A stretch of DNA of 64,000 nt from Lytechinus pictus (GCF_037042905.1 NC_087259.1:6572001-6636000), one strand, 5' to 3'; numbered from the stretch's first letter, positions 25,662 through 63,607 are shown. Translations and numbers: made by a program. The notes: generated by a model not told the origin, from the letters alone.

Positions 25662-25822
25662 TTAAGCTTCGTTTTCGCCTTCTGTCTCCAGACGGCTGTA
25701 TCCTTTGGATGGTTTGCCGCGTGATCTCAACTTTCTCACGGTTACCATGGCAACCATGGTAATGAAGAATCCAGCGGCCGCCACCAGCATCATATTGACT
25801 GGATTAGCCAACCATGATGTGT
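25662..25822 (-). CDS. Copy A terminal exon: TM helix and cytoplasmic tail
   Basis: (CT)n tract and cag acceptor; [19 protein letters not shown] followed by RKLRSR...GYSRL...ENEA-TAA. Confidence 0.9.
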
Positions 25823-28800
25823 CTGAGAGAGAGAGAGAGAAAGAGAGAGAGAGAAGAATATTATTATTCTTAAAGGTTTGCATGATATAAACAGTGTAAT
25901 ATATACTCAGAAAATTATTTTAATGACCTTTTTTTCTCCAAGTTATGGTGTGTCTATGGGCCTATCTTGTGTTAAACCTTTCGAGATACTGGGAAGAGTG
26001 ATGTTGAATATCAGGGGCCTCGATCCGTGTTTTGGATAGGGGGCAAACGTGAAGAAATTGCCCCAAATTTTCGCGCCAAATTACAATACAGAATTGTGAA
26101 CAATTACAATTTGTAGTATTTTTATACCAAGTTCAATGGTTTTACAGTAATTTCCAATGCAATTTAAGCATTATATTTGCATCGCATATTTTATTTCCAG
26201 TTGCCAAATTTATATAGAGGCAATCGCCCCTACCCCTCTCAACCACCCCCCCCCCAACCTGGATCGACGCCTCTGGTGAATATGACTTATACCATCTACG
26301 TAGATATATAAACAACAAAAATCGACATTCAACAATTTGGAAACAATGATGGCGCTATTTTACCAAAACACTGGAGGTCCATCAAATTACGGGTCTACGT
26401 CTGGGTCTACTAAGGCATCAGAGGTTCTACCATGGAGCTATTTTTGTAATCGCTCCATGGTGCTAATAAGATGTAAGTCTGTGGTTTAATTGCCGGCAGC
26501 TAATTTTTTTTCCCGGTAAGGCTCTTAGGCCCATGCAGGAGCAATCAAGCCATTCTATTTTCAGGGCATTTTAATGCGATATGCATTTTTTTGTATCAAC
26601 ACAGGAGATGCGGACCCGGGTGGCTTGAATGAGCAACCCCTCCATCCGACGTTTTTTCCCCAGAAAATGTGTAAAACCGAGAGAAAATGATAATCAATTT
26701 CAAGTCTTGGTGCATGGTGTGCTTTCTACTTGTTGTTTGATCTGTCGTTGTTATAACTTGACGTCATTTGTATTTTATCGGTTGTCCATCATTGTGAATG
26801 AATTGAATGAACTTTGAAATAAAAAAAGTAATATAAAACAGATATTACAAAAATAAAAGAAATTCTTTGCAGTTATAATGAGTCCCCTGGCTTATATCAC
26901 TATAGAAACGCTGTTTAAATTTTTGGCACATTCTTTAAGTCCATCACTGTAACAACTTAAAAAGACTTTTAAACAGGTTGTTTAAACTATTGACAAGTTG
27001 TTTAAAAATGAAGTTTGAATAGCTGTTAAAATGACAGGCTTAAAAAGTACTAAACATTTTAAGCATTTTTTGTTTATAGTATAGAGTAAAAAACTCACCA
27101 ATGGACCCGGCATGTTGACTAGACGTTGGACCGTTGGAAATGGTGTGTGGTTGGGAGCTCGAACCCCGAGACTCGCCGGCTGCACGTCTTGCCCTGGACA
27201 CACATCCCTGTGAGCATCGGGACGAGGGGTCATTGTCTTCGCAAACAAGGATGTCACAGTGAAGGTAGACCTTTACGCACAAATAAAATATGATAGAAAG
27301 AGTTCTCGTTAGGGTATTACAGCACAATGGCGGATCGAGGTAGGGGCACATCCGCCCATGCCCCTCCCTTCCCCCTTTGAGAGGCACACAACAAATTTAG
27401 GGGAATATTGTATGCATTACGCATACGAATGTGAGGACTTTGTTATTTTTTTTAGCTTTTTCATTTTTTCCCCTGGAACAAAATTACCTCCATTTTGTAG
27501 TTAAAACCTTTTTTGTTTCTGTTTGTGGGGTTTCTTTTTGCTGGTCAAATTTTTCCTGTACATAATCCCCCCCCCCCCCTTGGAAAATCCTTGATCCGCC
27601 TCTGTCACAGCAAATTCAGTGTAGCGTCTTTTTATCATTGGGAGTATCAGGATTTCATAATAGTGATAGCAATTCTTATTTCCGAAGGGTAGCCACTTCA
27701 GCTCTTAAGAACCATTCTCCCAGCGGACCCTCTATGTCATTACCCTTGTCTAAATGTTAAGCGCCTAGCAAGAAGGCAGAAGGTCCCGTTTTTTAAAAGT
27801 CTTTGGTATGACTCGGCCTGGGATCGAATCCACGACCTCCCGGCAAGAGGCCGGTTCAGGTCTACCGCTGAACCACCTTGCCCAATTTATTTTTTTAATG
27901 CGATTTTACAGGTTTGTCAGATTCATGATAGGAAAAGACTGATGTGTATGAAAAATGCAACAAACACTACAAAGATCAAATTATATCGTATCAATTTATT
28001 CGGGCTTTCCTTGCTGGGGGCCGTTTCATAAAGTTGTTTGTAAGTATATAAGAGTGACTTGAAGAACGGCTGGTGATCCTTTTCTGTGGTAAATGATATT
28101 CACCATTAAATGTTCATTGGTGATTGTTAGCTCGTAAGACTTTGAAAGGATCACCATCAGTCGTTCGCATCTTACGAACAGCTTTATGAAACACCCAACA
28201 GGAATGAATAGTGTCACACAGTTTGATCACAGTGTGTTCATATGTGGACTATGTGAAAATATTATTCACAGTCACTATTAAAATCTTCAAATTGTGCGAA
28301 GATGTGGACGCCTCGACAGTCGACAGTGTGACTGTTCACGGCGTATTCGCATGATCGACTGTGTATGTGATTCACACTGTTGGAATGCTCAAATTTTGCA
28401 GTGTGAAGGTGATTTCACACTGTGTCCCATACTGTGAACACACTGTGGGACAATGTTATGCATACAAAGGGCCTAATTTTCCAAAGTAGTTCTTTCCTGC
28501 TACGATTCTTGCACATTTTGAGCCTGAAAGGTATATATAGTCACACAGACCAGACTCTCTCTCTTTCTACTGCTATTAAGTTTCCTTATTCCAATTCTAT
28601 TCCTCCCTTAAAGCAATATAAATTTATTGCATGGGAAATCATCAAGGGGGCGCTCTGTCGTCCTGCTCCAAATTTATTTTATCATTCCACGATCACCACT
28701 CCCCTTACCTCGGGGTATTCACCAATGAAAGCAAAGGCGTCGATAGAGAATCCTTTTAACGAGGCTTCTTCTTCGTAAAATGCAACGGTAGCATCAAGTC

Positions 28801-63400: not shown

Positions 63401-63607
63401 AGAGTCAGGTGTCGCAGAAATCAAAGCTCAAATTAGAGCTGCCCTTTTATGTGTACATATATGTTTATATACCTAAAGAGGAGCCGAATGTATGATCGAA
63501 CGGGGGTCCGGTGCCATTGATTGTGCCTTGTTTTCTTATCCAATCGAAGTCGTCAACTGTGACGTCATTTATCCATGTACAATAGTCTTCTTCAAAGTCG
63601 CAATCAC
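50908..63607 (-). CDS. MAM + mucin stalk + ZP-domain type I membrane protein, copy B (5' end outside the window; at least 551 aa if both 39-nt exons are used)
   Basis: Exons 63607-63473, 63064-62802, 62146-62062, 60668-60585, 59464-59426, 59108-59070, 58642-58464, 57256-56856, 52983-52887, 52405-52234, 51068-50908. All are GT-AG, phase-compatible and open. The last five have the same lengths as in copy A (179/401/97/172/161 nt). Confidence 0.88.
51480..51612 (-). mobile_element. tRNA-derived SINE remnant
   Basis: Minus strand gcgcgatagctcagtcggtatagagcg ... cccgggtttgaa, a tRNA-like head with a degenerate body. Confidence 0.5.
52234..52405 (-). CDS. Copy B ZP-C end + RARR furin site exon
   Basis: 172 nt; [10 protein letters not shown]...GCVSRARR; aag / gtgagc splice sites. 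Confidence 0.93.
52887..52983 (-). CDS. Copy B ZP-C exon ([32 protein letters not shown])
   Basis: 97 nt; cacag / gtaagg splice sites; paralogous to 28709-28805. Confidence 0.92.
53372..53710 (+). mobile_element. Internal fragment of a non-LTR retrotransposon reverse transcriptase (CR1/L2-group-like), frameshifted
   Basis: Translates piecewise to [45 protein letters not shown]...[11 protein letters not shown], the N-terminal LINE RT motifs. Confidence 0.85.
56145..56395. repeat. About 250-bp near-perfect foldback palindrome (probable MITE)
   Basis: Arms acatcgaggcagtagccagaccctc...gcgcgaatt and aatttgcgc...gagggtctggatactgcctcgatgt, with an 11-nt loop. Confidence 0.85.
56856..57256 (-). CDS. 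Copy B ZP-N end / linker / ZP-C start exon
   Basis: 401 nt; [12 protein letters not shown]...DRCWATP...FIKDG; gtaagt donor. Confidence 0.95.
57494..57977. mobile_element. Two adjacent CACTG MITEs of one family (57494-57729 and 57736-57977), each TA-flanked
   Basis: About 85-bp TIRs cactgcaaaaactccggtgttgatttaacaccagccc...; absent at the homologous site near 31010. Confidence 0.85.
58464..58642 (-). CDS. Copy B ZP-N exon
   Basis: 179 nt; 3 aa differences from copy A; ccacag / gtaaaa splice sites. Confidence 0.92.
59070..59108 (-). CDS. Copy B 39-nt mucin microexon, duplicate 2 ([13 protein letters not shown])
   Basis: Same splice sites as duplicate 1 with one substitution; homologous to copy A exon 4. 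Confidence 0.8.
59426..59464 (-). CDS. Copy B 39-nt mucin microexon, duplicate 1 ([13 protein letters not shown])
   Basis: ttcttgtttctcatgcag acceptor, G|gtatga donor, phase 1-1. Confidence 0.65.
59680..60268 (+). mobile_element. 5'-truncated LINE (ORF2 C-terminus + 3' UTR + (ATTTG)n tail)
   Basis: [56 protein letters not shown] matches the typical CR1/L2-group ORF2 end; ends in aataaatgatttgatttgatttga. Confidence 0.8.
60585..60668 (-). CDS. Copy B Pro/Thr-rich linker exon ([28 protein letters not shown])
   Basis: ttctcttcag acceptor, G|gtaaaa donor, 84 nt, phase 1-1. Confidence 0.82.
60788..60826 (-). ncRNA. Degenerate minimal hammerhead-ribozyme-like motif (Penelope-type remnant)
   Basis: Minus strand gcct-ccgacga-a-gattc-tgcta-ggatc-gaaa-gctt-aggc: stem I, CUGANGA-like core (U->C), stem II, GAAA, and a palindromic AAGCUU stem III. 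Confidence 0.45.
62062..62146 (-). CDS. Copy B MAM domain exon 3 (IVFIGEVG...[16 protein letters not shown])
   Basis: MAM C-terminal IAVDDI...C motif; ttttttag acceptor, G|gtattt donor. Confidence 0.9.
62802..63064 (-). CDS. Copy B MAM domain exon 2 (GYYVYL...ARMVSP...CVTFWYY...[10 protein letters not shown])
   Basis: MAM core motifs; acag acceptor, AGG|gtatta donor. Confidence 0.92.
63473..63607 (-). CDS. Copy B MAM domain exon 1 ([11 protein letters not shown]...DFDWIR...GPPFDHT)
   Basis: Classic MAM N-terminal motifs CDFE-C-W, DDFDW and GPxxDHT; acag acceptor, G|gtatat donor. Confidence 0.92.

Follow-up and report, generated by a model that had tools for sequence, protein, structure and literature searches.

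The DNA considered here, referred to below as the window, is a stretch of 64,000 nucleotides (nt) from the sea urchin Lytechinus pictus (G000:C15:6572001-6636000, in an assembly of 812 Mb); the 50 kb past its end were examined in addition. The window carries two genes with a ZP module, copy A and copy B, which lie in tandem on the minus strand. Copy B is a chimera: its two ends derive from the duplication of a ZP gene, and its middle was copied, at the DNA level, from ten exons of a MAM-array gene located on another chromosome (C6). The best explanation of the locus, with a probability of about 0.8, is that A and B are tandem paralogues of the uromodulin/GP2-like type and that B acquired a block of MAM domains copied from the C6 gene. 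The original prediction, which was made from the sequence of the window, had proposed tandem paralogues whose N-terminal parts differ through gain or loss of domains after duplication, and this proposal is supported by the evidence set out below.

Origin of the parts of copy B

The chimeric nature of B follows from homology to the C6 locus that is collinear and extends through introns, and from a best match to the first three MAM domains encoded there. In a blastn comparison, B from 86960 to 60600 (numbering carried on beyond the window; C15:6632600-6658960) is collinear with C6:22312349-22351742, introns included, at 69-88% identity. The three MAM domains and the linker of B match the first ten post-signal exons of the giant MAM-array gene on C6, and the best paralogue of exon 2 of the MAM-a domain (85%) lies at C6:22318165, which is the first MAM match of a cluster spanning C6:22.32-22.50 Mb. 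At the protein level, the MAM block of B is 81.6% identical to residues 26-557 of P0279, a MALRD2-like protein of 6465 amino acids (aa) from Lytechinus variegatus; these residues comprise its first three MAMs and the linker, directly after the signal peptide, and the identity of the block to the other MAM stretches of P0279 is at most 40%. The block enters and leaves B in phase 1, the stalk microexons are all phase 1-1, and the reading frame remains open.

The ends of B are homologous to copy A. A self-comparison with blastn revealed a long 3′ block at 72-85% identity, and a second, shorter block comprises the first exon and its upstream flank:

21726-32404: 3′ duplicated block of unit A (blastn), collinear with 44087-59175
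44087-59175: 3′ duplicated block of unit B (blastn)
39559-40611: 5′ duplicated block of unit A (exon 1 and 5′ flank), homologous to C15:6664100-6665362

The five 3′ exons are equal in length in the two copies (179, 401, 97, 172 and 161 nt), and the phase 1-1 stalk microexon that precedes them is homologous in both (48 nt in A and 39 nt in B). Pfam places ZP-N and ZP-C on these common exons and MAM on three exons of B at 62.0-63.7 kb. Thus far, the exon models and Pfam agree with the original prediction of two same-strand genes that have in common one stalk microexon and five exons of identical length for the ZP module, a furin-type site and a predicted transmembrane (TM) segment, the last three of which occur in this order in both copies. 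Every junction in the variable region around the point of divergence is in phase 1 in A and B, which bears out the suggestion that modules are exchangeable there.

The homology was further predicted to stop at about 32430/59190, beyond which A would have an N-terminus unrelated to that of B. The collinear block does end close to this point, at 32404/59175, and only B has MAM domains; however, homology resumes further 5′. Positions 39559-40193 of A are 77% identical to the region of B exon 1 over 656 nt, and additional aligned blocks bring the matching 5′ flank to approximately 1 kb. The signal peptides of A and B are identical at 18 of their first 20 residues and also resemble that of P0002 from Strongylocentrotus purpuratus. 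The sequence of exon 1 and its 5′ flank occurs in only two copies in the genome, namely in A and B, so the signal peptide described as A's own is common to both genes. Looking beyond position 64,000 for the first exon of B, as the original prediction had advised, led to this result. A tblastn search with the A signal peptide over the 20 kb past the window gave no match, and the exon was found by a scan of 50 kb for open reading frames and splice donors.

These relationships suggest the following sequence of events. Copy B would be a whole-gene duplicate that has kept the 5′ flank, the signal-peptide exon, the stalk microexon, the ZP module and the TM segment. A segment of 26 kb or more, starting in donor intron 1 and belonging to the 5′ part of the C6 gene, would then have been copied and would have lodged in a phase-1 intron of B, ahead of the stalk microexon, where the phase-1 junctions would keep the frame open.

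Structure of the two genes

Exon edges were set by the GT-AG rule. Copy A consists of nine exons, all of its introns are GT-AG, and its spliced translation is identical, residue for residue, to P0156 (XP_063966469.1, 408 aa). P0156, which represents the L. pictus RefSeq records XP_063966469.1 and XP_063966470.1, maps to the window at 100% identity. The product comprises a signal peptide, the translation of three microexons, ZP-N/ZP-C, an RARR cleavage site and a TM segment. Its exons, in the order of transcription and all on the minus strand, are as follows (CDS, coding sequence):

39576-39642: exon 1, start codon and signal peptide MAKAILISLLLAVTVGNSLAG, ends in phase 1; CDS as in P0156, homologous to B exon 1 and to the N-terminus of S. 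purpuratus P0002
34583-34624: exon 2, 42-nt phase 1-1 microexon (DANINWYYSSMWPL); a similar exon product is found in S. purpuratus P0002
33570-33857: assembly gap in intron 2 (no strand), non-coding according to the exon model
33188-33247: exon 3, 60-nt phase 1-1 Thr/Pro-rich microexon; its 5′ part and the upstream intron match a 57-nt candidate exon of B beyond the window
32288-32335: exon 4, 48-nt phase 1-1 stalk microexon, common to B; an RNA contig at the ZP-N exon has a loose end that continues into it
31687-31865: exon 5, ZP-N, 179 nt (Pfam PF23344)
30295-30695: exon 6, end of ZP-N, linker and start of ZP-C, 401 nt (Pfam PF00100)
28709-28805: exon 7, ZP-C, 97 nt (spliced CDS)
27099-27270: exon 8, end of ZP-C, furin-type site RARR and conserved PHTISNGP stretch, 172 nt (Pfam; RARR aligns with the uromodulin cleavage region)
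25662-25822: exon 9, TM segment, short tail and stop, 161 nt (spliced CDS)

Intron 3 of A contains two inverted arms (32507-32687 and 32986-33138) that both match one element, further copies of which lie at C15:6636150-6636344, just past the window, and at C6:22317015-22317192. The element resembles a small transposon with inverted repeats.

Copy B reaches 28 kb beyond the window. Its model has 19 GT-AG exons and an open frame of 929 aa with no internal stop, and it encodes, in order, a signal peptide, the product of an optional microexon, three MAM domains, a Pro/Thr linker, the products of two 39-nt microexons, ZP-N/ZP-C, RARR and a TM segment. The original prediction had assigned to B a single MAM domain in three exons; the extension past the window revealed three MAM domains, encoded by nine exons; two of the domains (MAM-b, 2.0-4.4 kb past the window end, and MAM-a, 9.1-21.1 kb past it) lie outside and are confirmed by Pfam, with exons scoring 35-62 bits. 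The three MAM exons within the window score 28.1, 57.9 and 16.5 bits with the profile PF00629 and together cover profile positions 1-158. The features of B on the minus strand are listed below, again in the order of transcription:

C15:6664117-6664186: exon 1, start codon and signal peptide, MRKAILISLLLAVSV... / MRKAILISLLLAVSVRNSLQEGN, located by a scan for a start codon, a hydrophobic core and a phase-1 donor
Beyond the window: candidate microexon, 57 nt, phase 1-1, the counterpart of the third microexon of A, with splice sites that are intact and also conserved in L. variegatus
63473-63607: MAM-c exon 1 (Pfam; an RNA loose end at its border reads into MAM-b)
62802-63064: MAM-c exon 2 (Pfam 57.9 bits; RNA joints)
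62062-62146: MAM-c exon 3 (Pfam; RNA joints 60668>62062 and 62146>62802)
60585-60668: Pro/Thr linker exon, 84 nt, phase 1-1, the last exon of the C6-derived block (RNA joints; homology to C6:22351559-22351742)
59426-59464: stalk microexon, tandem copy 2, 39 nt, spliced to the linker (RNA joint 59464>60585, four runs)
59070-59108: stalk microexon, copy 1, 39 nt (an RNA joint that goes back 39 nt)
58464-58642: ZP-N exon, 179 nt (Pfam; B-type RNA contig with no mismatches)
56856-57256: end of ZP-N, linker and start of ZP-C, 401 nt (Pfam)
52887-52983: ZP-C exon, 97 nt (exon model)
52234-52405: end of ZP-C and RARR site, 172 nt (exon model)
50908-51068: last exon, TM segment, tail and stop, 161 nt (exon model)

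The microexons of A had been described as unrelated to B. This description is only partly correct, because the third has the 57-nt counterpart listed above; for exon 2, a search in B gave weak matches at chance level only. A tandem duplication at 58958-59597 covers the 39-nt stalk microexon of B together with its flanks. An intron of B carries a dispersed repeat at 60885-61805 (no strand), of which the genome contains at least 40 copies with 69-76% identity. Since the C6 donor locus lacks it, this repeat was inserted after the block had been copied.

Transcription of both copies

Transcripts were sought in four runs that had been chosen because they contain A. These runs represent RNA, since their contigs carry CT..AC joints, that is, GT..AG on the minus strand. 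In all four, the joints 63063>63472, 62146>62802, 60668>62062 and 59464>60585 match the exon edges of the B model, and spliced contigs lead from MAM-b through exons 1, 2 and 3 of MAM-c and the linker to the microexon of the recipient gene. The sequence of a loose end at 63609 corresponds to the end of MAM-b exon 3, and a contig of 1130 nt in run X1 extends approximately 528 nt further 5′, enough to cover MAM-b. The joint at 59108/59070, which goes back 39 nt, indicates that both copies of the microexon stand in tandem in the RNA. In run X4, a ZP-N contig with no differences from B has a depth of 259, near the 251 of the MAM contig. Other ZP-N contigs, of high depth, show 8-9 differences, including the diagnostic 58564 C>A, and have loose ends that read into exons 4 and 6 of A, and thus represent A transcripts.

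A-type and B-type contigs are present in all four runs, and both genes are therefore transcribed in all four samples, as a check proposed with the original prediction had called for. The depths of A contigs are 2,500-7,300 and those of B contigs 21-476, contig depth being a poor measure of expression. A segment of 58 nt in an intron of B (60772-60829) is represented in all four runs by many contigs with differing flanks at depths of approximately 7,000-9,600; it is probably a short repeat that occurs in many transcripts and lies outside the B mRNA.

Conservation of the locus

The arrangement is conserved in L. variegatus. There, a gene for a 788-aa MAM-ZP protein lies 5.6 kb upstream of a 409-aa orthologue of A, followed by a 7tm_1 gene on the opposite strand, in sequence that is free of gaps. 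The B orthologue is represented by XP_041482126.1/XP_041481683.1 (P0275 and P0157) and the A orthologue by XP_041481687.1 (P0277), with the same domains, gene order and G protein-coupled receptor (GPCR) neighbor as in L. pictus. P0275 has three MAM stretches (311 bits) as well as ZP-N and ZP-C; its NCBI name follows the MAM part only. The L. variegatus models of B differ from that of L. pictus in being 5′-incomplete and split from the model of a 106-aa MAM fragment, and in containing a single microexon product, which is of the 48-nt type, in place of the two 39-nt copies of L. pictus B. The 106-aa "MAM" model (L033:1-9447) lies just upstream of the 788-aa model and holds exon 1 of MAM-a (L033:9298-9441); the annotation of L. 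variegatus probably splits one B gene in two.

The receptor gene beside A is thus found in both species. In the window it is represented by an open frame of 267 aa at 15590-16393 (plus strand) that matches 7tm_1, the rhodopsin-family GPCRs, with 104.8 bits at profile positions 83-260, and that constitutes the final exon of a receptor gene, on the strand opposite to A and B. A third ZP relative lies on the opposite strand approximately 72 kb past the window (C15:6707938-6708342, plus strand), with 50% identity over the central exon.

The pair could in principle be an artefact of assembly, in which A and B are uncollapsed haplotypes or the gap at 33570-33857 conceals MAM exons of A. Heterozygosity is high in sea-urchin genomes, and the region contains four gaps. 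However, the copies differ by 5-11% in exons (coding synonymous divergence of approximately 0.2) and by far more in introns, their introns differ in size, the same runs contain separate transcripts of the A and B types, and the independent, gap-free assembly of L. variegatus has both genes in the same order. Uncollapsed haplotypes are thereby ruled out. Of the gaps, that at 33570-33857 is intronic, and the CDS of A across it equals the RefSeq protein; the other three (40315-40459, 40640-40937 and 42271-42417) are intergenic, upstream of A exon 1. No assembly gap touches any exon or reading frame. In L. pictus, tblastn searches with MAM exons found no relic in the whole window, including the part upstream of A, and no MAM-like sequence was found by tblastn in or upstream of the gap-free L. 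variegatus A orthologue, so that the L. pictus gap is very unlikely to hide MAM exons. An artefact of either kind is therefore extremely improbable.

Timing of the duplication and gain or loss of the MAM block

In a tree of the part from the ZP module to the TM segment, the A sequences of L. pictus and L. variegatus are sister to the B sequences of the two species, with 97/99 support, and the S. purpuratus sequences form a clade apart. Synonymous (dS) and nonsynonymous (dN) divergence were calculated exon by exon with the method of Nei and Gojobori:

L. pictus and L. variegatus: dS 0.07-0.14, dN/dS 0.13-0.44
A and B: dS 0.20-0.25 (0.206 ± 0.033), dN/dS 0.23-0.30
B MAMs and the C6 donor: dS 0.37 (0.365 ± 0.04), dN/dS 0.24-0.29
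Lytechinus and S. purpuratus: dS approximately 1.0, dN/dS 0.15-0.17

As judged from these ratios, both parts of B are under purifying selection. The order of the dS values places the duplication and the insertion after the split from Strongylocentrotus and before the split of L. pictus and L. variegatus. Both the duplication and the MAM insertion would thus have occurred in the Lytechinus lineage.

Which of the two copies changed is a separate question. It has to be considered whether the MAM block was acquired before the duplication and then lost cleanly by A. The dS between the B MAMs and the donor exceeds that between A and B, and apart from its inverted-repeat element intron 3 of A amounts to only approximately 220 bp, which would fit the scar of a deletion. 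On the other hand, this history requires one event more than a gain in B, a form with signal peptide, ministalk and ZP module and without MAM occurs in S. purpuratus (P0002) and in the urchin protein P0155, and the search returned MAM+ZP proteins of this clade from Lytechinus only. The introns of A contain no MAM relic in either Lytechinus species. Furthermore, the comparison of A with B is affected by gene conversion. The intron between the stalk microexon and the ZP-N exon (31866-32287 in A and 58643-59069 in B) is 89% identical in the two copies, compared with 49-75% for other non-coding sequence, and the dS of exon 8 is 0.08, compared with 0.27-0.30 for exons 6 and 7. Patchy gene conversion has probably taken place between A and B since the duplication, and the conversion tract in this intron looks recent. 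The Jukes-Cantor distances of pooled non-coding sequence are similar, 0.50 between A and B and 0.54 between B and the donor. Because of gene conversion, the molecular clock does not separate a gain of the MAM block in B from a loss in A. The architecture of the outgroups and the counting of events favor the gain, which is likely, and a prior acquisition followed by loss in A is rather unlikely.

Several points weigh against the explanation that B acquired a MAM block copied from C6 after the duplication. Taken at face value, the excess of the dS between the B MAMs and the donor (0.37) over that between A and B (0.20-0.25) would place the MAM copy before the duplication, with loss in A, and to set this order aside requires that the low dS between A and B reflects the patchy gene conversion, which we infer from the uneven identity along the two copies. 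No contig joining the microexon directly to the ZP-N exon of B is listed, the contigs breaking at the repeated microexon; the link between these two exons is deduced from the frame, the L. variegatus model and the matching depth of the contigs. No RNA was found for exon 1 of B or for use of the 57-nt candidate microexon, and the L. variegatus models are incomplete at the 5′ end. There is no L. pictus protein record for B among the records searched. Finally, the cleavage, polymerization and location of the A and B proteins are predicted by analogy.

The S. purpuratus clade of the tree contains the form with signal peptide and ministalk together with forms that bear Sushi domains. The closest S. 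purpuratus relatives of this ZP module (P0151, P0163 and P0002; locus L029) have Sushi domains, Sushi domains with a mucin region, or a signal peptide and ministalk only, with ZP parts that share more than 90% identity. Neither the window nor its extension contains the Sushi exons of P0151, and the first exons of P0002 were not found in the S. purpuratus locus examined. These relatives suggest an independent exchange of N-terminal modules in the same ZP lineage.

Relation to known ZP and MAM proteins

The ZP module of A and B aligns with residues 333-588 of human uromodulin (E 3e-20) and with GP2 (E 2e-15). Like these proteins (UMOD and GP2), A and B have ZP-N and ZP-C alignable over approximately 250 residues and a basic cleavage site after ZP-C; the predicted membrane anchor at the C-terminus would be a TM segment in A and B, whereas UMOD and GP2 have a glycosylphosphatidylinositol anchor. 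The N-termini differ: UMOD has EGF/D8C, A a short Thr/Pro stalk and B three MAMs. In A (P0156), PF00100 scores 97 bits and PF23344 36.1 bits, and in the B orthologue P0275 the corresponding scores are 93.9 and 39.4 bits, all above the gathering score; the exons of L. pictus B, taken singly, give the same ZP-N and ZP-C matches as those of A. In both copies, RARR follows the last ZP-C cysteines and aligns with the RFR region of uromodulin, and the PHTISNGP stretch after it is conserved in all relatives. Near the C-terminus, a hydrophobic segment of approximately 23 residues, as read from the sequence, is followed by basic residues.

Variation in the N-terminal modules of ZP proteins is well known, and the occurrence of MAM+ZP architectures elsewhere, which the original prediction had left to be searched, is borne out by annotated proteins of Antedon, Diadema and amphioxus. 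DMBT1, CUZD1 and the amphioxus "DMBT1-like" proteins (P0125 and P0201; CUB, SRCR, MAM and ZP) have adhesion or scavenger modules ahead of a C-terminal ZP, as B does, and the amphioxus proteins combine MAM and ZP in one chain. However, such mosaics differ from B in the nature and order of the other modules, and their ZP parts are 25-33% identical, so that they are not orthologues. In the crinoid Antedon (XP_071953276.1, P0139) and in Diadema (XP_072170511.1, P0145), MAM is followed by ZP-N/ZP-C, as in B, but there is a single MAM, the Diadema protein has YWTD repeats, and the ZP parts are only approximately 29% identical; the combination of MAM and ZP therefore arose independently. Among MAM proteins, the closest are the MALRD1/2-like product of the C6 gene and P0279; the first three MAMs and the linker of P0279 are 82% identical to those of B. 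By comparison with them, B has three MAMs only, a different signal-peptide exon and 5′ flank, and an end formed by the ZP module and the TM segment. An assignment of B to the MALRD1/2-like proteins, which have long MAM arrays, usually together with LDL-receptor class A (LDLa) repeats, was rejected because B has only three MAMs, no LDLa match and a ZP module. The papers returned by literature searches treat MAM and ZP only in separate proteins, and no paper on MAM+ZP proteins was found. The MAM+ZP architecture is not a discovery, and A and the B orthologue are already automatic RefSeq models.

Possible functions and evolutionary meaning

Proteins of the uromodulin type are cleaved and then assemble through their ZP modules, and MAM domains are adhesive or oligomerizing. 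By analogy, both products of the pair would probably be cleaved at RARR and assembled via their ZP modules into an apical extracellular matrix, to which B may add a MAM-bearing arm with an adhesive or oligomerizing role. The original prediction went further and envisaged a co-polymer in which plain A subunits space out MAM-bearing B subunits in one filament. The ZP modules of the two are close (dN 0.06) and uromodulin-like, with a cleavage site and a TM segment, both transcripts occur in all four RNA runs, and the 5′ flanks are homologous. Co-occurrence in bulk RNA is, however, a weak argument because the runs were picked for A. A co-polymer of this kind is possible, though it is not the likelier outcome. 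It is tempting to speculate, with somewhat less confidence still, that B, as a young lineage-specific chimera expressed from a 5′ flank homologous to that of A, serves as a sparse decorated subunit and A as the bulk subunit of one apical filament.

If true, such co-assembly would provide a natural and genetically tractable system for studying how ZP filaments become functionalized, and the function of the pair is open to direct test in L. pictus, which is a laboratory urchin. The locus itself is an unusually complete and datable record of exon shuffling, in which the recipient, the adjacent original and the donor on another chromosome are all present, together with homology at the level of introns, phase-1 junctions, purifying selection on both parts and a spliced chimeric transcript. 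Sushi domains are found instead in the S. purpuratus relatives, so that N-terminal modules may be exchanged repeatedly in this ZP lineage.

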